From: Utricularia gibba
Taxonomy: Eukaryota > Plantae > Magnoliophyta
Length of the DNA: 64,000 nucleotides
Direction: 5' to 3'
Assembly: GCA_002189035.1 (NCBI GenBank)
Contig: NEEC01000020.1
Location: forward strand, 558,001-622,000
Part shown: positions 3,080 through 38,288 of the stretch, piece by piece
How positions within the stretch are numbered: position 1 is the first letter of the stretch
How the letters are laid out: each line of letters starts with the position of its first letter
The notes under the pieces: generated by a model
Databases searched by the model: none
What the model saw: only the letters and a program-made list of their open reading frames with translations
Told to the model about the DNA's origin: nothing
Made by a program: the position numbers and the translations under genes

Positions 3080-4096
<1,017 letters not shown>

Positions 4097-7213: not shown

Positions 7214-8650
<1,437 letters not shown>

Positions 8651-9913: not shown

Positions 9914-12075
9914 GGAAATCGAATCGATTAAACGATAATTAAATGTACTTACAAACTAATAATAGTTAATAAATATTACTCGAATATTCATATAATTTTC
10001 TATATATATATATATATATATTTGTTTATTATTAATATTTAGATTTGATTAAAATTACTCAATTAATATATAAATTAAATGATTAAATGTTTTATTAGAA
10101 AATATAAATACTTGTATTTTAGATGATCAAATGTGCATAATTGTGTTTTGATATATTTGTTATATTAAAGGGAATAAAGTATTTATAAAATCAATCGAAA
10201 GACTATTATTATAACTATTTCATTAAATACAAAATAAATGAAAGTAATCCAAAGGATCCGTGATGATATATCAAATGGGGGAATGAAAGTGTTTAAATAA
10301 AACTCTCATAATTTTATATGAGATATTTTTCTTAAACATCGTAAGTAGATCATATAATATCATATAAGACATGAGTAGATCTTTACATTTGATATCATAA
10401 TGGAATCTATGATTATCCTATTGGTGGGATGAGAGGGCAATCAATGAAGACGCTGAATATCTAATAAGAGTACAATGTAAGGATATAGGTCTAATAATGA
10501 AATTTCATATTAGTTACAGATGATAGAAGAGACGTGCTAAAATAAATAAATTTTTTTAATTTTGTATTAGATTTTTTTCTCAAAAGAGAATAATGTAAAA
10601 CCATAAATATTAGATGTCCGTAACGGACAATATCGTATAAAAGGAAGGTAGGTCGTGACATTTCGACACACCTATGCACCGGAAACATTGGAATCATCAA
10701 TTCCAACGAATTTCCAATTTCTAATATCTTTTATCTACATAATCGTAATAATTTATGATATGTTAAAATCACATTTCTCTGGAATAAACACTTCATAAGA
10801 TTACGTATTTAACAAATATACGAAACTCAATATCAAACTATGTCACATATAAATGCCCTTTAGGCGATTATTTACATAAACATGCACTATTAGTATTTCT
10901 CAAATCAAATCATCACTAATTGCAAAAGTTGAACACTTCTAGAAGGATCAATGTTTTATGAATTTAACCCTCCTCTTGTCCCCCGCCTGATCTCTTTATA
11001 CACCAAGTCCCAATTACATAACTTAGGAAGCCAATAAAAAGACCACCTAAAACAATAAAGAATGACAAAAATATTATATTGTCCATGATGACCAATCTGC
11101 AAAACAAATATAATAATTAATAAATAATTCAAATAATATTATCAAAAAATCAAAATATGAATAACATAGTTTGTCTATTGTAATGATTTTTTTATGCTAA
11201 TATTCGTATTTTGTTAATTATATTCAGTTATTTGATTAATTCAAATCCGAATTTCATATTTTTGCTAATATAAAATCTCAAATCAATTAAATACAAAATA
11301 CGATTGTGTTGAATATTCAATTTATATTTAAAAAAACTGATAAAATAAATTAAATCAATGATTTATATTTTAAAAATATGCAATAAATCGAACATTTGAA
11401 TAACTATAAGTCGAAAAATTGATTAAACTGATTATAATTTTTAGTATATTTTAAAAAACAAAATACAATAAAACATTAGTTACGTATTAACGGTGTCTTG
11501 AATGTTGAGTGACCCATTGCATTTGCATTGATAATATATTTATAGGGAAATAAATGAATTTTGTGAATTAAAATATAATTTTGATAATTTATTTTTAAGG
11601 GAAAATCATTATTATCTTGACAGAAAAGGTTTTTATTTTTCAAATAATATTTTTCTTTATTATTAACAACACAAGAAATGTGATATTGGATTATTTTGAT
11701 TTTGAAAATTTTTAAATTGATTTTGTTGTGTAAATTGAGAATCTATAATATGTAAAATTAAATTTGAAGAAAATGAATTGGATTCCACTTATATTATTTT
11801 TTAAAGCAATTGAATATTAAAAAAATTAGTTATAATTTTATTAAACTTATTTTGCTTTTAAAAATAAAAAATAAAAATCTATTTGAAAGATATTTTTCAA
11901 TTTAACATCAATAAATCTTATTTTAAAGACTACCAGAAATGAAAAATTATTCCTTCTATTATATAAACTATAATTATTTGATTATGGTGTTTGACTATTA
12001 AGAAATTATTTTAATAAAATATAAATTAGAGTTTACAATTTTAAGAAAAGTAAAAATGACTATATATTTATGTTA
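9900..12075. repeat. Repeat unit A of the micropeptide array
   Basis: Colinear with 14410-16620, 21141-23620 and 24480-26100. Anchors: ttagatgat.aaatg.gcata, atgaatttaaccct, gacccattgcatttgcattgat. Confidence 0.85.
10964..11086 (-). CDS. Micropeptide copy A, 40 aa, intact: MDNIIFLSFFIVLGGLFIGFLSYVIGTWCIKRSGGGQEEG
   Basis: ATG lies 10 nt after the acceptor ttttgcag. Intron 11097-11483 has a GTAACT donor. TATAAATA at 11537-11544. Hydrophobic stretch followed by C and KR. Confidence 0.7.
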   Translation of the reverse strand: MDNIIFLSFFIVLGGLFIGFLSYVIGTWCIKRSGGGQEEG

Positions 12076-12094
12076 GAAAAGAAAGAAGAGCAAT

Positions 12095-12262
12095 ATATTT
12101 ATGTTAGAAAAGAAAGAAGAGCAGGAGAGACGTTGAGGTTTGGAACAATCCCCGTTGTAAGATTCATCTTCATCACTATTTTGTTATCTGTTTGCTGCAC
12201 CTCTTAAACCTATCCCACTGCTTCCCTCTACATTTCCATTTGTGTGGTCATCTTCAGATACC
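12095..12262 (-). pseudogene. Inverted relic of YSL exon 1 with internal deletions
   Basis: The reverse strand reads gggtatctgaagATGACCACACAAATGG..AGAGGTGCAGCAA..ACAGATAACAA..AATAGTGATGAAG.TGAATCTTACAACGGGATTGTTCCAAACCTCAACGTCTCT, matching three separate pieces of 18250-18480. Confidence 0.85.
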
Positions 12263-12263
12263 C

Positions 12264-12375
12264 AGTTAGGGTCCAAATTGAAAATAATTTTTCTGTAGTA
12301 CCTAAATTGCAAATATCAGTAAGATCATCCCTGAATTCAAATTTGTCAAGAGTTCAGACCTCCACAAAATAATTA
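12264..12375 (-). repeat. Element X, terminal part (inverted relative to the chitinase intron copy)
   Basis: Matches the reverse complement of 8005-8100. Confidence 0.75.
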
Positions 12376-14045
12376 TATGTTCGACTAATATTTAATCAAT
12401 TATTAGTTTGTAATTATATTTAATCAGCGTTTAATCGATTTGATTTCTTTGTGGATTAGTCAAGGGAAAAATTACTACATTGTTTAATAAACAAAAATTT
12501 AGTATATTAAATTATAAAAATTGAAATATAAGATAATAATCTCTATTGATGGAATTATAGACATAGTATTTATTTTAAGTAATTTATTATAAAAATATTT
12601 TAAAATTAGTTAAAAAATAAATAAATTCTTCTCTAAAATAACATAAATATATAGTTATTTGTTATTTTTTCAAAATCACAAACTCTAATTTATATTTTAT
12701 TAAAATAATTTCTTAATAATCAAAGACCGTAATGAAATAAACTAATAGTTTTTATAAAGAACGAATATTTTTTTTATTTCTTTTATTCTTTAAAATAAGA
12801 TTTATTTATATTCAATTGAAAAATATCTCTCAAGTAGATTTTTATTTATTATAATATAATATTTTTTATTTTTTAAAAACAAAATAAATTTAACAAAATT
12901 TGAATAAATGTTTTTAATGTTCGATTGTGTTAACAAATTATGCAAGCGGAATCCAATTCACTTTCTTAGAATTCAATTTTTCAGATTATTGATTCTGAAT
13001 TTATACAATAAAATAAATTTAAAAATTTTTAAAATCAAAATCATCCACATATCACATTTCTTGTGTTTAATAATAAAGAAAAATATTATTTGAGAAATAA
13101 AATTTTTTCTATCAAAATAATAATGATTTTCCTTTGAAAATATATTAATAAAATTATATTTGTAATTCATAAAATTCATTTATTTCCCTATAAATATATC
13201 ATTAATACAAATGCTATGTATCACCGAACATCCAAGTCACCTTTGATAGGTAACTAATGATTTATTATCTTTTATTTTTAAAATATAATAAAAATTATAT
13301 TGCATTTAATTGATTTTTCCACATATAGTTATTAAAATGTTCAATTTTTAAAATATAAATTATCAATTCAGTCTATTTTATCATTTTTTAAGTATAAATC
13401 GAACATTCATTATAACTGTATTTTATATTAGTAAAAATATGAAATTCATATACTCAGTTAATCAATTAACTCAATATAACTAACAGAATACGGATATTAG
13501 AATCGAAAATCATTAAGCTACATAAATTATGTTATTCATATTTCGATTTTTTGATAACATTTTTGAATTATTTATTAATTATAATATTTGTTTTGCAAGT
13601 TGGATAGCATGTACATATTTTTTTATGTTCTTTTCTTATTGCCATCATAGGTGATGTAATTCGGGATTGTTGGAAAAAGATAGTGAACATGGGACAAGCG
13701 GAGGGTAAATTTCGTAAAATATCGATTTTTCTAGAAGTATTCTGTTTTTGTGATTGGTGATGATTTAATATGGGAAATACTACTCATACATGTTTATGTA
13801 AATAATTAGCTGAGAAACATTTATATATGAGATAGTTAGATGCTAAGGTTCATGTGTTTAATAAATATGTAATAATATAAGATTATAATCTTATGAAGTG
13901 GTTATTCTAGAGAAATGTGATGTTAATACATTATAAATTATTAAAATTATGTAGATGAAAGATGTTGAAAACTCACAATTCATTGGAATTGGTGATTCTA
14001 CCACATTCAACATACGGGTGCGGTGAAATGTCGCGATATACACTT
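12375..14045. repeat. Repeat unit B, inverted copy
   Basis: Its reverse complement is colinear with ~10640-12075 and ~21850-23475. Confidence 0.85.
13609..13760 (+). pseudogene. Micropeptide copy B, frameshifted with stop codon lost
   Basis: TATAAATA at 13189-13196 and donor AG|GTAACT at 13250 are retained. The ATG frame ends MYIFFYVLFLLPS* because of a deletion. The homologous frame reads FLIAIIGDVIRDCWKK..GQAEGKFRKISIFLEVFCFCDW*. Confidence 0.65.
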
Positions 14046-14054
14046 GTATTGCAT

Positions 14055-14310
14055 TCAGACCCCTAATAATTATTAAATTTGTTAATCCATTTATTTTTGG
14101 ATTGTATTTTCAGTCTCCAATAAAAAATATCAAAAAAATTGTATCCAAGATATTTAGAAATTTAGGATAGATAAAAGATAAGAGTAACTATAAAATCAAT
14201 AAAATTACATGTTTAAAATAAATAATATCATGAGTATACAAGATATTTCATTTTTATATTCGTTTTTATTTAAAAAATAAATTTATATTTTATACAATAA
14301 CATTTAAAAT
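14055..14310 (-). repeat. Element X, inner part
   Basis: Matches the reverse complement of 7790-8030. Confidence 0.75.
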
Positions 14311-14409
14311 ATCTATTTTTTAACGAATAGATAAATCAATTGGATGAATAGATTCATTTGAAATCATTGCAAAAATGTCCAGATGATGCATTCGAGTTGA
14401 AAGCAAAGG

Positions 14410-16620
14410 TTTATTATTAGTATGTAGGTTTGATTAGAGTTACTCAATTAAGATGTAAATTAAATTATTAAAGGTTTTATTTGAAAATATCAATGTTTGT
14501 ATTTTAGATGATGAAATGCACATAACGTTGTGTTGATAAATTTGGGAAATTATACAGAATAAAGTATTTATAAAATTTATCAGAAGAGTTTAATTACAAT
14601 TGTTTTATTCAATATAAAATAAAAGAAATTAAGTCGAGGAGTCTAGTGATAATATTCTACATTAATTATTAATGGAAGAAGAGACATGTTTAAATAATAT
14701 CTTTCTAATTTTATATTCAAAACATATAATATAATGAAATACAAGTCTAAGTTGTGACATTTCAACATACCTATATGCGGGATGCACTGGAATCAACAAT
14801 TTCAATGAATTCTCAGTTTCTAACATCTTTCATTTACAAAATTATAATGTGTTAACATCGCATAAATCTAGAATAACCACTTCATAAAACTATCAATATT
14901 TATTACATATTTATCGATAAAATTATAATGTCATAAGCATGTACTAGTAGTATTTCCCAAATCCAAACATCACCAATCGCAAAAATCGAACACCTCTAAA
15001 AGTATCGGTATTACATATTACCAATCTTATATATAAATGCTCCTTGTCAATTAATTACATAAGCATGTAATAGTAGTATTTCTCAAATCAAATCATCACC
15101 AATCGTAAAAACTGAACACCTCTAAAAGTATGGGTATTTTATGAATTTAACCCTCTGCTTGTCCCACGGGTGATCTCTTTCTGCAACAACAACAAATTAC
15201 ATAACATATGAAGGCAGTAAGAAGAAGTCAACTGAAAAAACTGCAGAATATGAAAAATATCATAATGTCCATGATACCCAATCTGCAAAACAAATATTAT
15301 AATTAATAAATAATTCAAAAATATTATCAAAATATCGAAATATGAATAACATAATTTATCTATTTTAATAATTTTTCGGTTTTAATATTTATATTTTATT
15401 AGTTATATTCAATTATTTCATTAATCAAGTATCCTAATTTGATATTTTTACTAATATAAAACCTCAAATCAATTTAACAAAAAATACAATTATGTTGGAA
15501 GTTTTATTTATATTTACAAAAATTGACAAATAAATTAAATCTATTATTTATATTTAAAATATACAATAAAATCGAACTATATGTTGAAAAATCGATTAAA
15601 CAGAATATAATTTTTTATTATATTTGAAAAACGAAATACTACAAAACATTAGTTACCTATCAAAACTTCGTTGGACGTTGAGTGACCCATTGCATTTGCA
15701 TTGATGATATATTTAAAGAGAAATAAATGAATTTTGTGAATTAAAAATATAACTTTCATAATTTATTTTTAAAGATTTTTATTTTTTAAATAATATTTTT
15801 CTTTATTATTAAAAACTCAATAAGTGTGATATATAGATGATTTTTTATTTTGAAAATTTTTTAAATTAATTTTTTTTGTGTAAATTCAGAATCAATAAAC
15901 CGAAAAATCAATTTGAAGAAAATAAATTTGATTATGCTTATATAATTTGTTAATGCAATTGAACATTAAAAACATTCGTTCAAATTTTATGAAACTTATT
16001 TTTCTTTTAAAATAAAAAATATTATATTATAAAAATTAAAAATCAATTTGAGAGATATTTTTCAATTAAACATGAATAAATCTTATTTTAAAGAATAATA
16101 GAAATAATTATTATTCCTTCCTTTATGTAAAGTCTTAGTTTATTTGATTATTAAGACATTATTTTAAAACATTATAAATTACAGTTTACGATTTAAAAAA
16201 AAATAAAACATGACTCGATATTTATGTTATTTTAGAGAAGAATTCATTTATTTTTTTAACTAATTTTTTAATATTTTTTTACATAATGAATTATTTAAAA
16301 TTAATATAATGTACCTATAACTTTTATTCTATCAATAGATATTATTAGCGTATATTTCAATTTTTTAAAATTTAATAAAGTAATTTTTTGTTTATTAAAA
16401 AATTTAATATTTTTTTCCTCTTGGGTATTTCCCTAGGAAATTGAATGGGTTAAATTGATTAATAAATATTACTTGAACATATGACAGTTATTTATTCGTC
16501 AATAAATTTAAATTGTAATATATTATATTGGTATTCGTATAATTTTATATATATTTCTTGTATTTTAATTTGGTTAGAATTGCACAATTAAGATTTAGAT
16601 TAAGAAATTAAGCATTTTAT
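14410..16620. repeat. Repeat unit C
   Basis: Colinear with unit D. Contains an internal ~125-bp duplication (14935-15010 / 15061-15135). Confidence 0.85.
15147..15272 (-). pseudogene. Micropeptide copy C with one nonsense codon: MDIMIFFIFCSFFS*LLLTAFICYVICCCCRKRSPVGQAEG
   Basis: Same acceptor/ATG context and terminal QAEG*. One in-frame 3-nt insertion. TGA at codon 15. The TATA is the variant TTTAAATA. Confidence 0.65.
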
Positions 16621-18261
16621 TAGATACTATGCATCGCTATGGGGCATTCGGACGGATGGTCCCTAGACCAAAAGGTGCCCTCGCATACTATTAGCTTCAA
16701 ATGAGATATCAGTTTGTAATTTGTAATCCCCAAAATTAACAGTTTGTAATGTATCTTCACATTTTCCTTTAATATTGACTACCTCTAAATTTATTAAACA
16801 AACTAAATTCAACATTGTTGCCGTTAAACATCGGTCTTGTGAAGCGTGCTGATTTCGGGAATAAATGCAGGTTAGATACTAGTTTGTATTGATCTAAAGC
16901 CGGCCGATTTATGCTAAATATGGAAAAGGAGTTAGATATTTTTTACGTGGAAATATAGGTGGAAAAACTACGAAGTTGATGATAATTTCATTAATCATAT
17001 AATAATTAATGAGATTTTCCGCAAAATTTCATTAACCATATAATTTTATGTTAATAATAGTTTTTGTTACTCGGGTTAAGAGAAGTGACTTAAAAACCCT
17101 AAAAACGGGTTGATTAATTTTATTTATTTATTTATACATTTGAATTAATTTTTTATAATAGATGCTTTAAAATAATTTTTAAATATATTTTAAATATTTA
17201 GAAGAATATAAATTATTTTTAATTATCCTCACATCATTTTTAAATTCTATTAATTATAATTTATTTTTGACGTATTTATTTTATTTTATTAAAAACATTT
17301 TTAAAAACCAAAAAAATGCTATTTTAGTAAATTGAACAACAGTACAAATCTTCTTCAAATATGCAGTCAAAATCATCAAAAGGAATTCAAACTTGGGTAA
17401 AGTGCCGTTTTGATCACGAAAGTCGGAATCTTTGTCCACTGTGAATCACGGGAGGAGAAGGGGTTGACGAGAAAGGCAAGTGATGACGACGGCAAGCTTC
17501 AGACTTCCATAAGCTTTTATTTTTTATTTTTTCGTATCGCCATGATCTATCGTTCCTTACTCATCTCAGTGTAAAGGGGGATCTTGAGCATTTTTGCCGG
17601 AAGGCTGTTAATGGGTCAATTGTTGACGTTATCTGATGCTGAGCGAATTTCCAGAAACTAACTATGCTAGCTGATCGCATCTCGAAAACACAAGATTTCG
17701 TCTCCCCATTTTCTCCAACGTTGTTGCAAACGCAGGGATTGTTGGGATCAGTTACGAGTCGTCTCCTGCTATATGCATCATGGTTGTTACTGAAGCCATA
17801 TTTAAAGCCCCAGAGTAGCGATCTGTTTCCTTAGCTTTTTTTCCGGAAGGCTGTTAATGGGTCAACGACGAAAAAGGTAGCGATTGTTTTGTTTTCTTCC
17901 CTCAGCACCCCATCTCTTACGCAAACGCTAGAATATGATTGGGTAGTACGAATTCTAAACTTGTACTGCTGCAGTACATCAAAAATTCTAAACATTCTTT
18001 AAGCAGTTGTCATCGTCTTCCAATTTGGAGGGCCGTCTGGCGTTGTTGGCTGATTTGGGTCTTTTTCCCTTTTTATACCTGGCTGATTATCGCCACCCGG
18101 GCGAAGTTGTGAAAGGACATCGAACTGGGGGTGGCGTTTTTTTCTTTCTCCAATTCGGTTTTGTTTGGTTTCCTCATCGAGAGGGAATTTGTCTTTATTA
18201 ATAACCAGTTCCTCATCCGGGTGCGTTGGGTTTTGCTAGACATCCAGGTGGGTATCTAAAG

Positions 18262-21140
18262 ATGGCCACAGAAATGGAGATTGAGAGGGAAGCAATGGGA
18301 GAGATTTCAGAGGTGCAGCAAGCAGCTATGAGTATTCCTCCGTGGAAACAGCAGATAACAATCAGAGGGATACTTGCCAGTATAGTTATCGGGATTATTT
18401 ACAGTATAATAGTGATGAAGCTGAATCTTACAACGGGGATTGTTCCAAACCTCAACGTCTCTGCTGCTCTTCTTGCTTTTGTTCTCATTGGAACATGGAC
18501 ACAGATTCTTGAAAAGGCCAATATTGTGACCACACCATTTACTAGACAAGAGAACACAGTTATTCAAACTTGTGCTGTTGCTTGCTATGCCTTAGCTTTG
18601 GGAGGTGATTCATTTTGAGCTCTGGATGCTTTTGTTTTGTGTTGCTTGGTTACCGAATAATCCAAATGTTAAGTTGTGTAACCAGGTGGCTTCGGTTCAT
18701 ATCTTCTGGGATTGAACAAGAGAACTTATGAGCAAGCAGGGGTTGATACAAAAGGGAATCCACCTGGGAGTTACAAAAATCCAGGGCTTAATTGGATGAT
18801 CCCCTTCCTTTTGGTTGTCAGCTTTGTTGGATTATTAGCCATGGTTCCCCTGAGAAAGGTGAAAGCACAGCCAAGAAGTTGAAATTGTATTCTACATGCG
18901 TGTTTTGTTTGGTTTCCTCATCCTCATTTTTTTTTTTTATTTGCAGATAATGATAATAGATTACAAGCTAGCATATCCAAGTGGAACAGCAACAGGTGTT
19001 CTTATCAATGGATTCCATACAAAGAAAGGAGACAAAGCAGCAAAGTATGGTCATCCTCTTTTAGCTGTTGAGATTAGAAAAGGAAATCAGTTACTAATGG
19101 CAATTAACCTGGCTTTCTAAATGAATCTTCAGGAAACAGGTGAATGGATTTCTAAGGTTCTTCTCCCTCAGTTTCATCTGGAGTTTCTTCCAATGGTTCT
19201 ATTCCGGTGGTGAGCAGTGTGGCTTCATACAGTTCCCAACATTCGGCTTGAAAGCATGGAGACAAACGTGCAGTCCATTATTCTCATTTTCTAACTATTG
19301 CTACTCTTTTCAATTGCAACCATTAACTAAAACAAAGTTGATTTCTGCAGATTTTATTTCGACTTCAGCATGACATATGTAGGAGCCGGCATGATCTGCT
19401 CCCATCTGGTGAATTTTTCTCTAGTTTTTGGAGCTGTACTTTCTTGGGGAATCATGTGGCCCCTAATACATGCTAACAAGGGGAGCTGGTTTCCAGCAGA
19501 TATTAGTGAGGGTAGCATGAAGAGTTTAAATGGCTACAAGGTTGGTCTAAGAACCTTCATCCTCCATGTGGAATTTCAAATTGGTGTTGTGCCTAAGCTT
19601 CATTCTTGATCATTATTTCCCTTATGTACACAGGTATTCATTTCAATCGCCCTTATTCTTGGTGATGGGCTCTACAATTTTGTCAAGACTCTCATCATCA
19701 CTATCAGAAACATGCATGCTACGTTCAGAAAGCATCATTTTGGAATAGGTGATCCCTAGTGCCATTTGACCTTAAATTTTCTTCTCAGATTACATAGAAG
19801 TTGATCTTGTGTGAAGTTTAAACAGTTATAATCACATCGTTTTAGCTTATTCGTACACATGCTTTCTCCTCTCCTCCATCTGTATGTGTTATGTTTCTGT
19901 ACAATTGTGTCAAGAGTCCCATCTTCACTATCAGAAACTTGCATGCTACATTCAGAAAGCATCATCTCGGAATAGGTGACCCATAGTGCCATTTTACCTT
20001 AAACTTTCTTCCCAGATTGCATAGCAGTTGATCTTGTGTGAAGTTTCAATGGTTACAGAAGAATTGTCTTCTTAGTTTATTGATGCACATGCTTACTCTT
20101 CTTCTCCCTGTGTGGAATATGTCTGCTGTGGTTTATTCTTTTGCACTTCCAACTGCATTCCATGGGAGACTTTTCTTATCTTGCTAACATGTATATCAAC
20201 AGTGAGACCAGAAGAAAAGGGGGAGAACTTGGATGACATCCAACAAAATGAAGCCTTCATGAGTGAAAGCATTCCTCTGTGGGTGGCTTGTGCAGGATAC
20301 ACATTCTTTGCCGTGATCTCCGTTGTCGTCATCCCGATTATGTTTCCTCAGCTCAAGTGGTACTACGTGCTCGTCGCATATATCATCGCCCCCACTCTGA
20401 GCTTCTGCAACGCCTATGGAGCTGGTCTCACTGATATAAACATGGCCTTCAACTACGGCAAAGTGGCTCTCTTCATCTTGGCTGCTCTTTCCGGGCAAGA
20501 AAATGGAGTCGTCGCCGGACTTGTTGGATGCGGTTTAGTCAAGTCCATGGTTTCCATCTCCTCAGACTTGATGCATGACTTCAAAACAGGGCATCTCACA
20601 CTCACATCTCCTAGAGCCATGCTCATCAGTCAGGCAATCGGCACTGCCCTCGGCTGCCTGATCGCCCCTCTCACATTCTTCCTCTTCTACAAGGCCTTCG
20701 ACGTCGGAAACCCGGAGGGCATCTACAAGGCGCCATACGCATTAATCTACCGGAACATGGCGATTTTGGGAGTTGAGGGCTTCTCAGCCTTGCCACTCCA
20801 CTGCCTGCAGCTGTGCTATGGCTTCTTTGCACTAGCAGTCCTGATAAACTTGGTTAGAGATGTGATCCCACAGAAGTTGGGCTTCTGGATCCCCCTTCCG
20901 ATGGCAATGGCCGTGCCATTTCTCGTCGGAGCCAACTTCGCCGTCGACATGGGGGTGGGGAGCTTGGTGGTTTATCTGTGGCATAAGATTGATAGCAAGC
21001 AGGCTGGTTTGATGGTTCCTGCGGTTGCTTCAGGGCTGATATGTGGAGATGGGCTCTGGATATTGCCTTCCTCCATTCTTGCCTTGGCGAAGATCAATCC
21101 CCCCATTTGTATGACATTTTTGCCCTCAACTAATTCCTAA
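18262..21140 (+). CDS. YSL: YELLOW STRIPE-LIKE metal-nicotianamine transporter (OPT family), 7 exons
   Basis: Exons 18262-18604, 18686-18858, 18947-19044, 19133-19267, 19351-19540, 19634-19748, 20203-21140. Motifs [88 protein letters not shown]. Confidence 0.95.
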
Positions 21141-23620
21141 TGAAAATTGAATTGATTAAACGATAATTGAATATAGTTACAAACTAATATTAATTAAAAA
21201 TTATTAATCGAATACTTGTATAATTTTCTATATATTTTTGTTTATTATTAGTATTTAGGTTTGTTTAGAATTATTGAATTAAGATATAAATTAAATGATT
21301 AAAGGTTTTATTAGAAAATATAAATGTTTGTATTTTAGATGATGAAATGTGCATAATATTGTGTTGATATATTGAGAAATCAGACGGAATAAAGTATTTA
21401 TAAAATTCATCGAAAGAGTCTAATTATAATTGTTTCATCAAATACAAAATAAACGAAAGTAAATCTAGGAATCTAATGATGGTATACTACATTGATTATT
21501 GATAGAGAAGGGAGCGTGTTTAAATATGATCACCTTAATCTTATATGAGGTTTTTTATTAAGAAAATAATAACGTAAAATCGTGAGAATTGAATACATAA
21601 AATATATAATATCATGTAAGGCGAGCATGAATAGTAATGAGATGGTAAACAATCAACAGGGATGTTGAGTGTCTAAAAAGAAAAGAATATAAAGACACGG
21701 ATCTAGTGGCCATATCTCAAATTAGTTATGTATGGTGAGTAGACTTTTTGAAATAGATAAACTCTTTTAATTTTACATGAAATTGAGGATAACATAAAAC
21801 ATTGAAGATTGAATGTGTGAAACAGATAATATTGTGCCATATGAGCATAAGTCATGACATTTAACTACATCCATGTGCCGAATGCACTGGAATCATCAAT
21901 TCCAATGATTATCAGATTGTAACATCTTTCATCTACACAACTATAACAATTTATAATGTGTTAATATCACATTTCTCTATAATAACCATTTTATAAGATT
22001 ATCAATCTCATATTATTACATATTTATCGAACACACGAAACTTAACATCAAACTATGTCATATATAAACGTTACTTTGGCAATTATTTACATAAACATCT
22101 ATTAATAATATTTCTCAAATCAAATCATCACCAATCACAAAAACTGAACATTACTAGAAGCATCAGTATTTTATGAATTTAACCCTCCTCCTGTCCCCCA
22201 TGTGATCTATTTCTCCAACAACCGCAAATTAAATAACCTATGAGGGTAATAAGAAAGGTACATAAAAAAATGGAGATTACAAAAAGTATCAGAATGTATA
22301 TGATGTCCATCTTGCAAAAAAAATATTATAATTAATAAATAATTAAAAAAATACTTTCAAAAAATAGAAATATAAATAACATAATTTATCTAGTCTAATG
22401 ATTTTTCGATTCTAATATCCGTATTTTGTTAGTTATATTCGGTTATTTGATTAATTGAGTCTCCAAATTTCATATTTTTACTAATATAAAACCTCAAATC
22501 AATTCAATGAAAAATACAGTTATATTACATGTTTGATTTATATTTAACTGATAAAATACATTAAATCAATTATTTATATTTTTAAAAATATGCAATAAAA
22601 AACGAACATTTCAATAACTATATATCGAAAAATCGATTAAATGGAATACAATTTTTTCTTATATTTCAAAAACGAAATAGAACAAAAGTTACCTATCAAA
22701 TATGCTTTGGACTTTGAATGACCCATTACATTTGCATTGATAATATATTTAAAGGGAAATAAATGAATTTTGTGAATTCAAAATATAATTTTAATAATTT
22801 AATTTCAAGGGAATATTATTATTATTTTGACATAAAAAAATTATTTTTGAAATAATATTTTTTTTATTATTAACAACATACGAAATGTGATGTGTGGATG
22901 ATTTTGATTTCGAAAATTTTTAAAATTCGTTCAAATTTTACTTTTAAAAAATAAAAATATTATATTATAAAAAATAAAAATCTATTTGGGAGATATTTTT
23001 CTATTAAACATGAATAAATCTTATTTTAAAGAATAACAGAAATAAAAAATTGCTCCTTCTTTTATATAAACTATTATTTTATTTGATTACGGTCTTTGAT
23101 TATTAAGAAATTATTTTAATAAAATATAAATTAGAGTTTATGATTTTAAAAAAAATTGAAAATGACTTTATATTTATGTTATTTTTAGAGAATAATTCAT
23201 TTATTTTTTTAACTAATTTTATAATATTTTTTAATAATGAATTATTTAAAATAAATACGATGTATCTCCAACTATTATTATATCAGTAAAGATTATTATC
23301 TTATATTTCAATTTTTTAAAACCAATTATACTAAATTTTTGTTTATTAAAAAATGTAATAATGTTTTTTCCATTGGCTAATTCCCAAGGAAATCGAATCA
23401 GTTAAACGATGATTAAATATAATTACACACTAATAATTGATTAATAAATATTACTCGAACATACAACAATTATTTGCTCGTCAATAAATTTAAATAATAA
23501 TATATTATATTGGTATTCGTATAATTTTTATACATATATCTAGTATCTAAATTTGATTAGAATTTCATAATTAAGATTCAGATTAAGCAATTAAGCATTT
23601 TATTAGAAAATACAAGTATT
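21141..23620. repeat. Repeat unit D, starting at the YSL stop codon
   Basis: Colinear with units A, C and E. Confidence 0.85.
22179..22310 (-). CDS. Micropeptide copy D, 43 aa, intact: MDIIYILILFVISIFLCTFLITLIGYLICGCWRNRSHGGQEEG
   Basis: The ancestral ATG position reads ATA, but an in-frame ATG sits 3 codons upstream, right after caag. Intron 22311-22692 has an AG|GTAACT donor. The TATA is the variant TTTAAATA. Confidence 0.65.
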   Translation of the reverse strand: MDIIYILILFVISIFLCTFLITLIGYLICGCWRNRSHGGQEEG

Positions 23621-24007
23621 TCTAGGTGAATTTTCGGGAAGCATTGTGGAAATAATTTTTTTGACCACAATAGTCTTACATTCTTGATTGTCGAATAGTA
23701 AACAACATTAGAAAATTATAATGATTTCTTAGATGAGTGTTATGAATTCTACCAGTTATTATTTTTATAATAGTTTATAGAGAAATAAGTAGTAATTTAT
23801 ATAATGATAAATATGTAATAAAATAAATTTCATTTTTATAAACATATTATTTCTTTAAAATGGATCGTGTAAGTTCTTTTTTTGTTTATTTATATTTCAA
23901 ATTTTTTTAATAATGCTATAAAAAAATTTTATTAAACACTTTATTGCAAATTTTAATGTGAATATCACCACTTTCGAATTCTAGAATATGTAAAAAATGA
24001 TGGAATA

Positions 24008-24475
24008 GGCATTGCCCTCGCCTGCCTAATTGCCCCTCTCATTCTTCCTCTTCTACAAGGCCTTCGACGTCGGAAACCTGGAGGGCATCTACAAGGCGCC
24101 ATATGCATTAATCTACCGGAACACGGCGGTTCTCGGAGTTGAAGTCTTCTCAACCTTGCCACTCCACTGCCTGTAGTTCTGATGAACATGATCAGAGATG
24201 TAATCTCACAAAAGTTGGGCTTCTGGATCCCTCTTCCGATGGTGATGGCCGTGCGGTTTCTCATCAGAGCAAACTTCGCCGTCGACATGGGGGTGGGGAG
24301 CTTGGTGGTTTACCTATGGCATAAGATTGATAGCAAGCAAGCTGGTTTGATAGTTCCTGTGGTTACTTCTGGGTTGATCTGTAGAGATGGACTTTAGATC
24401 CTACCTTCCTCTTATCTTGCTTTGGCGAAGATCAACCCCCAATTTGTATGATATTTTTTCCCTCATTTAATCCTT
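24008..24475 (+). pseudogene. YSL 3' fragment
   Basis: Close match to 20640-21140 with frameshifts, a deletion after LPLHCL and premature stops. No 5' part. Confidence 0.92.
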
Positions 24476-24479
24476 ACTC

Positions 24480-26100
24480 GAACACATGACAATTATTTGT
24501 TAATCAATGAATTTAAATGATAATATATTATACGAATACTCGTATAATTATATGTCTTTTTATGTGTATTTTTTTTATTTAGATTTGATTAGAATTAACA
24601 AGGATGCTCTAAGAGGAGAGAATGTAAGGATAGAGGTCTACTAATGATCTTATATTGGCTATGTACAATAGATAGGATGTGTTTAAATATGGAGAATCTT
24701 CTAATCTTGTATAATACAATTTCTTTATAATTGGATAACGTAAAATCGTGAGAATTAGTTATATGAAATGGACAGTATCGTATAAGATGAAGATGAATCA
24801 TCACATTTCGTCAAACTGATTCGTTGGATGCACTGGAATCATCGATTCCAACGAATTCCCAGTTTCTACATCTTTCATCTACAGTAATAATTTATAATGT
24901 GTTAACATCACATTCTTTGGAATAATCAGTTCATAAGATTACCAATCTCGTATTATTACATATTTATCGAACAAATGGAACTCAACATCAAACTATGTCA
25001 TACATAAATGCTCCTTAGGCAATTATTTATATAAACATAGTAGTATTTTCCAAATCAATCGTAAAAACCGAACACTTCCAGAAGAATCGGTATTTTACGA
25101 GCTTAACCCTCCGCTTGTCCCCCAGACGATCTATTTCTCAAACAACCCCAAATTACATAACCTAGGAAGGCAATAAGAAGGCAACAGAAAAAAATGAAGA
25201 GTACGAAAAGTATCAGAATGTCCATGATGCCCGACCTGCAAAACAAATATTATAATTAATTGATAATTCAAAAATATTGTCAAAAAATCGAAATAGAAAT
25301 AACATACTTTACCTAGTTTAATGATATTTCGGTTCTAATATCCATATTTTGTTAGTTATATTCACTTATTTGATTGATTGAATATACTAATTTCATATTT
25401 TTGCTAATATAAATACTCAAATCAATTAAATAAAAAAATATATTAAATTGATAATTTATATTTTTAAAAATATGCAATAAAACCAAACATTTTAATAACT
25501 ATAAGTTGAAAAATCGATTAGACGAAATATAATTTTTTATAATATTTCAAAAACGAAATAGAACAAAACATTAGTTACCTATCAAATGACTTCAACGTTG
25601 AGTGATCCATTGCATTTGGATTGATGATATATTTATAGAGAAATAAATGAATTATGTGAATAAAAAATATAATTTTAATAATTTAGTTTCAAGAGAAAAT
25701 TATTATTATTTTGAAAGAAAAGATTTTTACTTTTTAAATAATACTTTTCTTTATTATCAACGACACAAGAAATGTGATGTATGGATAATTTTGATTTTGA
25801 AAACTTTTAAATTACTGTTGTGTAAATTAAGAATCGATAAACCAAAAAATTGAATTTAAAGACAGTGAATTTGATTCCACTTATATAATTTTTTAATGCA
25901 ATTGAACATTAAAAACATTACTTCAAATTTTTTTAAATTGATTTTGTTTTTAAAAATTAAAAATATTATATTATAAAAATTAAAAGTATACTTAAGAGAT
26001 AATTTTCAATTAAACATGAATAAATATTATTTTAAAGAATAACAGAAATAAAAAGTTATTCTCTCTTTTATATAAAAAATTAATTTATTTGATTACGGTC
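24480..26100. repeat. Repeat unit E, downstream of the YSL fragment
   Basis: Colinear with unit D, with internal deletions. Confidence 0.85.
25103..25225 (-). CDS. Micropeptide copy E, 40 aa, intact: MDILILFVLFIFFCCLLIAFLGYVIWGCLRNRSSGGQAEG
   Basis: TATAAATA at 25630-25637, donor AG|GTAACT, intron 25236-25578, acceptor ttttgcag, ATG 10 nt into exon 2. Confidence 0.72.
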   Translation of the reverse strand: MDILILFVLFIFFCCLLIAFLGYVIWGCLRNRSSGGQAEG

Positions 26101-26109
26101 TTTCTTTTA

Positions 26110-27015
26110 TATTAGAAGGATTGATATTTTACAAATTTAACCCTCAGCATGTCCCTCGTGCAATCTATTTCTCCAACAACCTCAAATTGCATAAATTAGG
26201 AAGGAAATAAGAAGGCCACCGAAAAAAATAAGGAGTATGAAAAATATCGTAGCGTCCATGATGTGCAAAATGCAAAACAAAATTTTAGTTAATAAATAAT
26301 TCAAAAAATACTGACAAAAAATCGAAATACAAATAACATAATTTATCTTGTTTAATGATTTTTGATTCTAATGTATGTCGTTTGTTAACTATATTTAGTT
26401 ATTTGATTAATCGAGATTCTAATTTCATATTTTTACTAATATAAAACATCAAACTAATTAAACAAAAAATACAGTTATGTTGAATGTTCGATTTATATTT
26501 GAAATATTAATAAAATAAATTAAATCAATGATTTATATTTTTAAAAATATGCAATAAATCGTACATTTCAATAAATATAAGTCAAAAAATCGATCAAATT
26601 GACTATAAATATTAATAAAATAAATTAAATCAATGATTTATATTTTTAAAAATATGCAATAAATCGTACATTTCAATAAATATAAGTCAAAAAATCGATC
26701 AAATTGACTATAAATTTTTATTATATTTTTAAAAATGAAATAGAAAAAAATATTACTTACATGTAAAAGGTAACTTGGATATTAATTGACCCATTTCATT
26801 TGTAATGATGATATATTTATGGGGAAGTAAAAAAATTTTGTGATTTATTTTCATTTCTGTAAATTTGAAATATAATTTCAATAATATATTTTCAAGGGAA
26901 TAAAAACATTATGCTGACAGAAAATATTTTTATTTTTCAAATAATATTTTTCTTGATTATTAACAACACAAGAAATATGATATGAAGATAATTTTGATTT
27001 TAAAATTTTAAATTG
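26110..27015. repeat. Repeat unit F (partial)
   Basis: Homologous to the ORF, intron and promoter part of the other units. Confidence 0.8.
26137..26259 (-). pseudogene. Micropeptide copy F with one nonsense codon: MDATIFFILLIFFGGLLISFLIYAI*GCWRNRLHEGHAEG
   Basis: 40 codons with TGA at codon 26, where copy E has TGG. Acceptor AG lost (ttttgcat). TATA mutated to CATAAATA. Confidence 0.65.
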
Positions 27016-27649
27016 ATTTTGAAAATAAAAAATGATTCTACATTTATATTATTTTCAGATAAGAATTTATTTTTTATAATAAAATTAGTTTTATAGTATT
27101 GTTATATAATAAATTGTTTAAAATACATATTATGTTGTTATTCTAACCTAATAACAAATTATAACATAAGTATGAAATATAATAAATTGATATGATGTTG
27201 TTGAAAATAAATTGTAAAATTGATAGTTTAATTTCTATTTTTCGTTTCTATTATCTTTCAAAAAAAAATTATAAAATTATAAAAAAAATATTAAACACTT
27301 TAATGCAAATTTTTTAGTTGACTAGGGCATTGGGGATGATGCAATTCTAAACTCGAATTTTAACGTGTAAGTCATTTTCGGTTTCTGGAACATTTAAATA
27401 TGATGAAATAATGTAAAATTTCTTGTTTGTAGTGCAATCCTATGCATTACTGCGGGGCATTTGGACTCGTGGATGATCCCTAGACCAAAGGTGACTTCGC
27501 TCACTGTTCGCTTCGAATGTGATATCAGTTTGTAATTTGTGCGGAATTGCATTATTCCCAACCTTAACAGTTTGTAATGTGTCTTCACATTTTCCTTTAA
27601 TATCAACTACATCTAAATTTATTAAACAAACGAAATTCAACGTCAAACT

Positions 27650-28320
27650 ATATCATATATCAACGTTCATTCGAATTTTTTACATGACCATATACTAGTA
27701 GTATTTCATAAATCAAACCATCATCCATCATAAACCCAGTTCGATGGATCGGTATTTTACGAATTTATCCCTCAGCCTGGTCATTGCCTGACTTCCTACA
27801 CTCCCAAACTTCATAACCTATGAAGGTAACAAGAATGAAGGCAAAGATGCCCATAACTATATAAAATACAGTTAGTATCTCGATCATGTCTAATCTGCAA
27901 AACAAACATTATAATCACAAGTTTAATAACTATAAAATCAAAAAGCCGATCAAAATGAATATAGCTTTTATTGAATTTGGGATTTATATTTTCAAAAAAC
28001 AATCGATAAAATTGAAAATTAACAATAAGATTAAAAAATTGAAGCAGAACAATACATTAATTACCTTTCAAATGATATGAGCTGGACTTAGGATATTGAG
28101 TACCCATTGTATTTGCATTCATGATATATTTATAGGAGAGTGAATGGATTTTGGTGATTTATTTTGCATTTTGTGAATTTACATACAATTTTAATAATAT
28201 TTTCAAATGCACCGAAATTATAAAGGCATTTCATTTTCCAATAATTTTAATAGAAAAAATTGCTAATTTTTTCAAATAAGATTTTCTTTATTATTAATGA
28301 TACAAGAAATGTTATAATTG
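27650..28320. repeat. Repeat unit G, the most diverged
   Basis: Keeps the promoter, exon 1, a shortened intron and the ORF. Confidence 0.75.
27765..27887 (-). CDS. Micropeptide copy G, 40 aa, intact: MIEILTVFYIVMGIFAFILVTFIGYEVWECRKSGNDQAEG
   Basis: TATAAATA at 28127-28134, donor AG|GTAATT, intron 27895-28064, acceptor ttttgcag. Indels relative to the other copies preserve the frame. Ends QAEG-TAA with a synonymous Gly codon. Confidence 0.7.
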   Translation of the reverse strand: MIEILTVFYIVMGIFAFILVTFIGYEVWECRKSGNDQAEG

Positions 28321-28838
28321 ATTTTATTAATTAAATTGATAATTGATTAATAGAAAAACCGAATTGAAAGAAAATGAATTTGCTTTTGTTTTTTTTTAAT
28401 TTTTGAAGAAAATGAAAAAATAGATATCCTATTGTTCAAATTTCATTTAACTCATTTTTAAATTAAACAAATTAAAATAATTTATTGGAAAAAAACAATT
28501 TGAAATCTCTTTGGGAGAGGTTTTTCTTCCAAAATAATATTCTTGGATTTTATTTTTAAATACAAACAATTTCTATTCTAAAAAATATCAGTAATTAAAA
28601 TTAAAAAATGATTAATTTTCATTTTTTGATATATTTTGAATTTCTCATTTTTTAAAATAAAAAAGAATATTAGTATGTACAAAATATAACATTAATTTTT
28701 AAAATTATGTGGAGGTGGTGGTATTTGGGCTTGGGCTTGTGCATGGTGACCAGAAAATGGGATGATAATTGGGCCGAGTAAATGAGCCTATCTGAAGACG
28801 ATACGAGGCCCTTATTTATTTGTGAGGATGTTTTGCTG

Positions 28839-28847: not shown

Positions 28848-28898
28848 TTTCAATTGAAGCCGCGGTGGCAGCATTCACGTTTCTGGTTTCTATCGGAG

Positions 28899-29467
28899 AT
28901 GTCGATCGGAGAGACGGCTTGCACCTACGCTGCCCTGATTCTTCACGACGATGGGATCTCAGTGACCGTGAGCTACTTGTCTTATTTTCCGCTCCGTTTC
29001 ATACATTTATCGTTTTGGCATTCAGATTTCGGATCCTCTGTTTTGTAGGCCGAGAAAATTGCTACGCTCGTGAAGGCTGCGAATTTGACAGTGGAGTCGT
29101 ACTGGCCGAGCCTCTTCGCGAAGCTTTGCGAGAAGAAAAACATTGAGGATCTTATCTTGAACGTTGGTGCTGGTGGCGGCGGTGCTGCGCTGGCTGTTTC
29201 TGCTCCGGTGGGCGGCGCTGCCTCGGGCGGTGCTGCACCGGCGGCTGCTGCTACGGTGGAGGAGAAAAAGGTACTAGCTTTGCCCTTAAATGGCCTCTTC
29301 ATTACCTGAAGTGCTTGAAATGAAACCCTGTCAATGATGACCTGTCTTGTAGAAAGTAAAATTGGTTTCATGATTATTTATTTATGATCTGTGCTTTGCA
29401 ATATTTCTTCCAGGAGGAACCGAAAGAAGAGAGTGATGACGACATGGGTTTCAGCTTGTTTGATTAA
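28899..29467 (+). CDS. RPP1: 60S acidic ribosomal protein P1
   Basis: Exons 28899-28967, 29049-29270 and 29414-29467 give [43 protein letters not shown]. Confidence 0.96.
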
Positions 29468-36579: not shown

Positions 36580-38040
36580 CTATTGACCATGACCCATGTA
36601 GGGTGGACCTCCGTGATGTGGCCTTGCAACCCCTGGGCCGATCTGTGGCTGGCTACTGAAGCCTCCTTGCATCCCCGTTTGCCCTGCATAGCCCCCAATG
36701 CCAACTTGACCACCATAACCAGGATTATTAATCATTGGTGGCATCCCCTGTGGAGCAACACCAGGTGGCATCCCTCCAAGCACATTTCCAATACCCAATC
36801 CAGCCCCTTGGGAAGCCAATAAAGCAGCCACAGCCTGCCCTATGGCCACAGGTGCAGCAGCAGGATTGAAACCCATGGGTGGAACTGCTGGCCCAGCACC
36901 TGGTGCCATCAAGTGGCCAACGTTGTGCCCTACGCCACTGCCTCCCGAGTATCTCCCCTTCTTTGCAGGATGATGATACCCTTGATGTCCCTGGTGTTGA
37001 AGTTGGTGATTGAAGTTCTCCCTGTTGTATTTCGGCCCATCTATGGCCCTTTGGCAATGAAGCATCTGACCCTCAAAATTTTTGTGTGGTTCCTCTAATG
37101 CTCTCTTGGCACTTTCAAATGTCTTGTACACAAATAAACAAAACCCTTTAGGTTTCCCAGTCTGTTTGTCTAAACCAAGAGGCCCCTCCTCAATCTCACC
37201 AAATCTTGAGAAGAACTCATATAGCTTGCTAGGATCCAGCTCCGCACACACATTGCTCACATAAATCTTCCTCTGAGTGTATTCGGAAACATTAGGTGAT
37301 GGAAATGCCGGCATCGGAGGCGGTGCCGAAGACTGAACAGGCCCAGCTGAGGCCAGCTGACATGAAGTCATTCGGCCTTCGATAAGCTTCTGCGGCTGCT
37401 TCAATGCACGCCTAGCACCATCCCGGTGTTTATAAAGGATGAAACCATACCCCTTAGACTTACCAGTACTTTTATCTCTTACCACCTTGCAATCTTCAAT
37501 CTCCCCATACTTCCCGAACACAGCGGTTATAGCCTCGGTGCTTGCATCCCAGCCAAGGCCATGGACAAAAACCTTGCAGTGCGCAGGATCGCTCCCAGCC
37601 AATTCAAGCAACTTCTCGGTTATGCCAGGATATTTCGCAGCAGCTTCCTTGAATAAAAGCACCAACTGGTCCTTAGAAAATGGCTCAAGCAGCTTCTCCA
37701 GCGGCTCTTCCTCCAATTCATCCTCGAATTCCACCTTCTGTACGCCATTTACCACCGGAGGATTCTCATCATTCCTTTCCTCCTCCTTCGAAATAGCATC
37801 ACCCCCTTCGCTATAACCCTCAGCACTCTCCGGAACAGCCTCTTCAGGCTCTTCTACATCTTCTTCCAACACTTGCTCCTCGGCCGCTGTGTCCTCTTCC
37901 ACAATCTCGCTATCTATGGCCGCTCCGGAAGCTGGCTCCAACAAGTCCCCATGCGCAAGTTCGGACTCATCGGGCTGTGCCGGTGAATGTTCGGGCTCGC
38001 CGGCAGCTTCGCCCGCCCTAGCTTTCCGCTTCCTCGGCAT
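36580..38040 (-). CDS. UBA2: UBP1-associated protein 2-like RNA-binding protein (2 RRMs)
   Basis: Acidic N-terminus, KLLEPFSKDQL, RRM1 (KVFVHGLGWD..KGYGFI), RRM2 (KIYVSNV..KGFCLF) and a Gly-rich tail. Probable start MPRKRK at 38040. Confidence 0.92.
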   Translation of the reverse strand: MPRKRKARAGEAAGEPEHSPAQPDESELAHGDLLEPASGAAIDSEIVEEDTAAEEQVLEEDVEEPEEAVPESAEGYSEGGDAISKEEERNDENPPVVNGVQKVEFEDELEEEPLEKLLEPFSKDQLVLLFKEAAAKYPGITEKLLELAGSDPAHCKVFVHGLGWDASTEAITAVFGKYGEIEDCKVVRDKSTGKSKGYGFILYKHRDGARRALKQPQKLIEGRMTSCQLASAGPVQSSAPPPMPAFPSPNVSEYTQRKIYVSNVCAELDPSKLYEFFSRFGEIEEGPLGLDKQTGKPKGFCLFVYKTFESAKRALEEPHKNFEGQMLHCQRAIDGPKYNRENFNHQLQHQGHQGYHHPAKKGRYSGGSGVGHNVGHLMAPGAGPAVPPMGFNPAAAPVAIGQAVAALLASQGAGLGIGNVLGGMPPGVAPQGMPPMINNPGYGGQVGIGGYAGQTGMQGGFSSQPQIGPGVARPHHGGPPYMGHGQ

Positions 38041-38288
38041 GGGAATTGCTGAAGATGAGAAATTAGGGTTTTTTTTCTTTTGATCGGGGATTGGGGAGAG
38101 CGCTGCACACTCCATGACACACCTCCTGTAATTTCTTAAAATTCTATTTTTTTAAAAAATAAAAATAATAATATTATGATAAAATTAATAGATTAATTTT
38201 AATTTTTTAAACGGATCGCCCATGGCACAGGAAACCTTCCTTTTGTCCACATCATGCTTATTCCAGGCAGGCTATGGCAAGCCATCTC

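Follow-up and report, generated by a model that had tools for sequence, protein, structure and literature searches.

Seven copies of a candidate membrane-micropeptide gene around a YSL3-like transporter gene of Utricularia gibba

The question raised by a duplicated region of the Utricularia gibba genome is whether a small open reading frame (ORF), present in seven repeat units and predicted to encode a single-pass membrane peptide of about 40 residues, is a gene or an accident of composition. The region lies in a 64-kilobase (kb) window, by which we mean the whole stretch analysed (assembly GCA_002189035.1, contig NEEC01000020.1, positions 558,001 to 622,000 of the forward strand; coordinates below are those of the window). 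It is plant nuclear DNA, with a guanine plus cytosine (GC) content of 40-47% in coding stretches against ~22% in spacers. An earlier reading made from the DNA letters, here called the sequence-only reading, had described seven copies, and all of them were found where it had placed them and in the state it had given, with A, D, E and G intact, C and F interrupted by one stop and B frameshifted. We propose, with about even confidence, that they form a protein-coding family, young and specific to one lineage, in which it is the production of the peptide and its character as a membrane helix that have been under selection, and not its sequence; the copies can be regarded as a credible small-gene family, expression of which is unproven. 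The copies are the following, nucleotides being abbreviated as nt.

10964-11086, minus strand: ORF of copy A, 40 codons from ATG to TAA, intact
13609-13706, plus strand: remnant of copy B, lacking 25 nt near the start and, through a 1-nt deletion, the stop
15147-15272, minus strand: ORF of copy C, 41 codons, with a 3-nt insertion and a premature TGA at 15228-15230
22179-22310, minus strand: ORF of copy D, 43 codons from ATG to TAA, intact
25103-25225, minus strand: ORF of copy E, 40 codons, intact, the nearest to the family consensus
26137-26259, minus strand: ORF of copy F, with a premature TGA at 26182-26184 (TGG to TGA), the AG acceptor lost and a non-homologous 3' flank
27765-27887, minus strand: ORF of copy G, 40 codons, intact, the most diverged, with 24-40% amino-acid identity to the others

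The four intact copies (40-43 codons) are complete ORFs of at most 100 codons with a stop and an ATG in a usable context, and a hidden Markov model built from them detected no further copy in the six-frame translation of the 64-kb window. The principal alternative to a coding family is that the ORF is a neutral relic or a proto-gene that never functioned. It would then be what is left of a dead gene, or a chance product of sequence rich in T and poor in A, would have been copied sevenfold some 9% of divergence ago, and would still be open in four copies only for lack of time to decay. We consider this possible, though on the doubtful side, and the way in which the copies have changed argues against it. 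In the six copies other than B, insertions and deletions (indels) were compared with those of the flanks (859 columns), where 48 events were counted, 7 of them multiples of 3. At the flank rate the ORF should have received ~7 events, ~6.2 of them frameshifting, and no frameshifting event was observed in the six copies (Poisson P=0.002). The ORF indels that did occur, +3 in C and both +3 and -6 in G, are in frame in 3 cases out of 3 (P=0.003). Homopolymer and low-complexity content is alike in the ORF (0.35) and the flanks (0.42), and the lengths from acceptor to stop, a measure independent of the alignment, are 133, 136, 133, 133, 133 and 130 nt. The comparison of frame preservation with flanking DNA that the sequence-only reading had suggested came out in favour of its claim. 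The start codon of copy D is a further point against a neutral relic: ATA now stands in place of the ancestral ATG, and 9 nt upstream a TTG has turned into an in-frame ATG, again before GAC and directly after the AG acceptor. An insertion was considered for the three extra codons of this copy and rejected, as the new upstream ATG replaced the lost one.

A second line of evidence comes from the hydrophobic core, which had been said to change residues freely while staying hydrophobic. The 20-residue core has a mean Kyte-Doolittle hydropathy of 2.3-3.3 in all six copies. When the substitutions observed in each copy were re-dealt to sites of the same ancestral base, with their types kept, 6.8 polar or charged residues were expected in the 20 codons of the core and 1 was observed (permutation P=0.004), so that this part of the claim holds; the mean hydropathy of the core was 2.67, compared with 2.35±0.16 after permutation (P=0.018). 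Forward simulation with the flank mutation spectrum gave the same picture with weaker P values. Residue identities, for their part, look nearly unconstrained. The base composition of the ORF points in the same direction, since 31 of its 71 compositional changes are from AT to GC (~20 expected from the flank spectrum, as a count) and A-T transversions are scarce, which argues that a GC island is being maintained; a GC content of 35-40%, kept despite an AT-biased spectrum, is not what a neutral relic would lead us to expect. Nor is the condition of copy G, the oldest, which differs from the consensus at 43 positions and is still intact and hydrophobic.

Several results nevertheless weigh against a coding family, and a number of them favour the neutral relic. 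The ORF diverges at or above the rate of its flanks: identity between copies is 70-84% in the ORF, below the 82-89% of intron and promoter, and divergence from the consensus is 14.2% in the ORF and 9.25% in promoter plus intron (Fisher P=4e-4; 1.53-fold). In a tree where units A-F form nearly a star with G as outgroup, the summed branch length is 1.6-1.85 times as great for the ORF as for the flanks. Mutation in the flanks has a strong AT bias, and its spectrum predicts a 1.29-fold divergence for a segment as GC-rich as the ORF, so that ~1.29 of the observed 1.53 is accounted for by mutation; the residual excess has P=0.055. Pairwise ratios of non-synonymous to synonymous rates (dN/dS) are mostly 0.8-3, and the maximum-likelihood omega of 1.35-1.46 does not differ from 1 (2ΔlnL 1.3-2.0). 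Classical coding constraint, which was to be sought by dN/dS, is therefore not borne out, omega being ~1.4, and positive selection on the ORF is not claimed either, because the excess falls to P=0.055 once AT-biased mutation is allowed for and an omega above 1 is not significant. The depletion of stops is marginal (2 observed, 5.9 expected, permutation P=0.053), with P values of 0.05-0.39 across the models used. The ORF is T-rich and A-poor, stop-free runs of at least 38 codons are common in the units, and a second sense frame, which has no ATG, is open over most of the ORF in most copies, with stops before the end in D, E, F and G; part of the openness of the ORF thus comes from composition, because this ATG-less frame is open too. 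As it was this openness that drew attention to the ORF, the frame tests are subject to an ascertainment bias. Of the seven copies, three are already broken, and no homologue was found in any protein, family, structure or synteny search, the last covering four other Lamiales.

The RNA data weigh in the same direction. Of the words sampled from unit D, no RNA run contained as much as one twentieth, and the neighbouring RPP1 gene is present in nine RNA runs of this organism. Positions 23700-28699, which hold copies E, F and G and a YSL fragment, have zero depth in four RNA runs from three studies, these being assembler contigs of small runs from unknown tissues, which cannot show absence of expression; RPP1, ~1 kb away, has a depth of tens to hundreds in the same four runs, with both introns spliced out. 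The search for transcripts of the micropeptide copies was accordingly negative, for D as for E, F and G.

The hydrophobicity result and the in-frame indels are judged to be the least affected by the caveats of ascertainment and composition, and a coding family remains the reading we favour. The wider statement of the sequence-only reading, that of a real and fast-evolving family undergoing birth and death, is upheld in part: the frame, the core, the GC content, the rescued start of copy D and the decay of three copies out of seven (B, C and F), which fits birth and death, speak for it, and the lack of a transcript, an omega not different from 1 and the marginal stop depletion speak against it.

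The units also have the anatomy of a gene. Every unit has the TATA sequence CTATAAATA, except C and D, which have CTTTAAATA; a GT donor follows ~60-70 nt downstream and is retained in all seven units. After the donor comes an AT-rich stretch of 170-490 nt, ended ~10 nt ahead of the ATG by the acceptor TTTTGCAG (GCAAG in D and B, and with AG lost in F). Around the ATG, position -3 is A in each of the six copies; position +4 is G in five of them (A, C, D, E and F) and A in copy G. GC content is 13-20% towards the intron, 35-40% within the ORF and 26-30% past the stop. The corresponding features are as follows.

11097-11483, minus strand: putative 5' untranslated region intron of copy A, with GT at 11483 and AG ending at 11097; TATA CTATAAATA at 11537-11545
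13250-13598, plus strand: intron-like stretch of copy B; TATA at 13188-13196
15283-15656, minus strand: putative intron of copy C; TATA-like CTTTAAATA at 15710-15718
22311-22692, minus strand: putative intron of copy D; TATA-like CTTTAAATA at 22746-22754
25236-25578, minus strand: putative intron of copy E; TATA at 25630-25638
26502-26606 and 26607-26711: perfect (100%) 105-nt tandem duplication in the intron-like part of copy F
27895-28064, minus strand: putative intron of copy G, cut to 170 nt; TATA at 28127-28135; conserved promoter block to ~28332

The 105-nt tandem duplication of unit F is far younger than the duplications of the units themselves. The TATA, the GT..AG pair and the step in GC content support a putative two-exon gene with a non-coding leader exon of ~25-30 nt. 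These signals are equally present in the broken copies and so reflect shared ancestry rather than current function. A different explanation is that the functional unit is something other than the peptide, with the ORF incidental to it: either a gene for a small, spliced non-coding RNA, or a module with promoter or regulatory function that is tied to YSL3. The promoter block and intron, at 82-89% identity, are better conserved than the ORF at 70-84%, and the unit always travels with YSL3 flanks. We find this explanation unlikely. A non-coding exon has no reason to restrict its indels to multiples of 3 or to avoid polar codons, no Rfam family was matched at E≤1 on the DNA of 9-30 kb, no transcript of any kind was seen in the RNA runs, and several units, among them A, B and C, have no intact YSL gene alongside.

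No conserved in-frame ORF lies downstream of the stop, where the open frames differ among copies, and the ORF is therefore not the first exon of something longer. This bears on another explanation, in which the ORF derives as a fragment from a transposon or a larger gene, for example as the N-terminal membrane anchor of a cytochrome P450 or another type III protein, captured and then amplified. P450 N-terminal anchors have a layout like MD, helix and basic cluster, which the peptide resembles, and the end of the ORF, GAG GGT TAA, can be read as a weak GT donor. We regard such an origin as very unlikely: upstream of the ORF there is an AT-rich, intron-like stretch, the copies are purely local, transposon proteins and terminal repeats were not seen, and no significant match to a longer protein was obtained among 1.84 billion representatives. 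The peptide also shows no similarity to anything else in the window, YSL included, and derivation of the ORF from a YSL helix was rejected on the same grounds.

For the peptide predicted by the coding-family reading, AlphaFold, run on an alignment of four sequences, returned a single helix at residues 2-33 (predicted local distance difference test score, 92-97) followed by a disordered tail. The N-terminus is MD or MI, and the helix is followed by 2-3 lysine or arginine residues in 6 of 6 readable copies, with a Cys within a few residues of this basic cluster, likewise in 6 of 6. Invariant in the four intact copies are the Met, a Tyr near the helix end, a Ser after the basic residues and the Q, E and G of a terminal GQ(E/A)EG; within the ORF, conservation is highest at the final codons, GAG GGT TAA. 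The charge pattern predicts an N-out/C-in topology. The sequence-only reading had taken this layout for a type III signal anchor, and the part that stands is the arrangement of charges, basic residues being found only C-terminal to the predicted helix. Co-translational insertion dependent on SRP, which that term implies, would not be expected for 40 residues. When a chain of this length is terminated, the helix is still inside the ribosome tunnel, and insertion would thus have to be post-translational. S-acylation of the boundary Cys, raised by the same reading, is a plausible conjecture, and phosphorylation of the Ser after the basic residues of the putative peptide would be plausible as well.

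The family had not been recognised when it was first described, and searches at the level of proteins, Pfam, PDB, Rfam and four other Lamiales, which did not extend to close relatives of this species, returned no relative. The four intact peptides have no exact match among 15 billion proteins. A word-indexed profile search of 5.8 billion proteins gave a single noise match, to a 67-residue hypothetical protein (E=3), and an exhaustive profile search of the 1.84 billion representatives gave 0 matches. Nothing beyond viroporins and generic small membrane proteins came up in the ESM Atlas, none scoring above 0.78. In Pfam, hmmscan with the four intact peptides gave only sub-threshold matches (at most 13.5 bits) to transmembrane segments of unrelated families, and none of the named families sarcolipin, phospholamban, RCI2/PMP3, DVL, CYSTM and SMIM was matched at the gathering score; the PDB likewise yielded only sub-threshold matches to transmembrane segments. 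All these sub-threshold matches are single-pass transmembrane segments, for example those of integrin β3, LAMP2 and mucin-15, as is expected of a generic helix followed by basic residues. A pattern scan of metagenome DNA for the conserved 3' ORF end found 0 matches. By synteny, no family member was seen beside two YSL3 loci of Handroanthus, one of Phtheirospermum, or the homologues of an RRM-protein gene of the window in Erythranthe and Sesamum, where the neighbourhoods differ. In Handroanthus, a hypothetical gene for 74 residues, with an intron (L004 12605-13624, minus strand), is convergent to the YSL3 homologue and lies ~750 nt from its end, in the same relative position as the micropeptide gene; it was rejected as a counterpart, its position being apt and its sequence unrelated.

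The family is set in a region (9.6-28.3 kb of the window) of nested segmental duplications, both tandem and inverted. The seven micropeptide units, of ~1.2 kb each, are placed there around a gene for a metal-nicotianamine transporter, YSL3-like and belonging to the OPT family, and parts of the YSL3 flanks, 5' and 3', have been duplicated along with the units. The arrangement is as follows.

10700-12075, minus strand: unit A
12640-14030, plus strand: unit B, forming a palindrome with unit A
14900-16250, minus strand: unit C
18226-21140, plus strand: YSL3-like transporter gene, the sole intact YSL3 gene of the region
21856-23200, minus strand: unit D
23965-24400, and inverted at ~12070-12300: YSL fragments
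24828-26103, minus strand: unit E
26090-27012, minus strand: unit F
27617-28340, minus strand: unit G

Units A and B make up a large, imperfect head-to-head palindrome (10700-14030, centre near 12350), with the inverted fragment of YSL exon 1 (~12070-12300) at its centre. Upstream of YSL3 there is a further repeated element that recurs among the micropeptide units (16543-16815, 23526-23612 and 27394-27646) and bears a partly conserved ORF of ~46-70 codons (…HYKLL.LGI…YKLISH.K…). The YSL3-like gene itself contains a 215-nt tandem duplication (19670-19883 and 19897-20113, 82% identity) that spans an exon-like ORF and could be a duplicated exon, a mutually exclusive pair of exons, or a pseudo-exon. 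Beyond the duplicated region, a complete RRM protein is encoded at 36583-38115 on the minus strand, its closest relatives, 66-73% identical, being in Rehmannia, Erythranthe, Sesamum and other Lamiales. Two class III chitinase genes lie in opposite orientation at 3080-4024 (minus strand), an intact ORF of 314 codons, and at 7214-8613 (plus strand), where the gene is in pieces (7214-7555 and 8110-8613) through an intron or a break and is frameshifted at its end. The first two exons of RPP1 (28895-29138) occur in the RNA contigs in two versions of similar depth, one identical to the window and the other with 12 differences and a slightly different junction; the latter probably represents an allele, or else a paralogue, of the ribosomal P1 gene.

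Taken as a coding family, the copies would be orphan two-exon genes transcribed by RNA polymerase II and spread, along with the flanks of the YSL3-like gene, by local tandem and inverted segmental duplication. Each would consist of a TATA, a non-coding exon 1 of ~25-30 nt, an AT-rich GT..AG intron of 170-490 nt and an exon 2 opening ~10 nt before the ATG. Exon 2 would encode 40-43 residues, beginning with a short N-terminus, which is MD in most copies, and continuing with a hydrophobic helix of ~25 residues, a boundary with an aromatic residue and Cys, two or three basic residues, the invariant Ser and an acidic tail closing in GQ(E/A)EG. We propose that the peptide enters the membrane post-translationally as a single-pass helix with its basic and acidic tail in the cytosol, and that selection may have held the reading frame, the start codon and the hydrophobic character of the core, not the identities of the residues, copies B, C and F having been lost over time. 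Its most likely role would be that of a low-abundance, tissue-restricted membrane modulator, or else of a young gene of weak fitness effect.

Known micropeptides offer points of comparison. Sarcolipin, phospholamban and DWORF, which act with SERCA, and the bacterial KdpF, MgtR and AcrZ have 30-50 residues, one helix and a short charged tail, and the genes of the bacterial transporter micropeptides adjoin that of the transporter; the family described here resembles them in size, single helix and short charged tail. Phospholamban and sarcolipin are tail-anchored with a cytosolic N-terminus, whereas the charge pattern here predicts the opposite orientation, and no sequence or Pfam relationship was found. 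The transporter micropeptide families are also conserved, while this one evolves at about the neutral rate, and its link to YSL3 is one of co-duplication only. A functional tie to YSL3, for which co-duplication is the only basis, is attractive; that the peptide could be a small regulatory or stabilising YSL3 subunit, born de novo from T-rich DNA, retained solely because its translation yields a membrane helix, and co-amplified for its work with the transporter, as a plant counterpart of phospholamban with SERCA or of KdpF with Kdp, is an idea to which we attach only the slightest probability. Ost4, a 36-residue subunit of the oligosaccharyltransferase with an N-out/C-in topology, is single-copy, ancient and conserved. 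It is, like the present peptide, a very small single-pass N-out/C-in protein and shows that such a topology is possible at this size, but the family here is a multi-copy orphan and no similarity to Ost4 was detected. Among plant peptides, RCI2/PMP3, DVL/RTFL and the non-conventional peptides (reviewed in PMC12744755) likewise have fewer than 60 residues and come from small genes often missed by annotation. RCI2 differs in having two helices and in being conserved, and DVL in having a conserved RTF motif and no clear helix; none of these families has a Pfam match here. The 'secreted transmembrane peptides' of Arabidopsis were rejected as a comparison, as they are PROSCOOP propeptides and not comparable.

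The closest parallel in mode of evolution is provided by the emerging ORFs of yeast that follow a transmembrane-first ('TM-first') route, arising de novo from thymine-rich DNA under selection on hydrophobicity and not on residue identity (Vakirlis et al. 2020, PMC7005711), and whose products use conserved post-translational insertion routes (Houghton et al., PMC11384008). The ORFs of the two systems share their shortness, taxonomic restriction, T-rich DNA, a product that is essentially one transmembrane helix and the need for post-translational insertion. The present case differs in being a plant two-exon gene with a TATA and a leader intron, in a local array of seven copies, and in being known from DNA sequence only; in the yeast cases the helix is C-terminal, whereas here it begins at residue 2-3. 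The family may have originated de novo from T-rich DNA by a 'TM-first' route.

Should the family prove silent, it would serve as a caution that recent duplicates, where their DNA is rich in T and poor in A, can give the false appearance of a conserved small ORF. Should it prove to be expressed, it would add an unannotated gene family to the genome, with a suggested link to metal transport, and would provide a plant example of a young membrane micropeptide family in the midst of birth and death, in which selection is visible on frame and hydrophobicity and not on sequence, a 'TM-first' prediction so far documented mainly in yeast.

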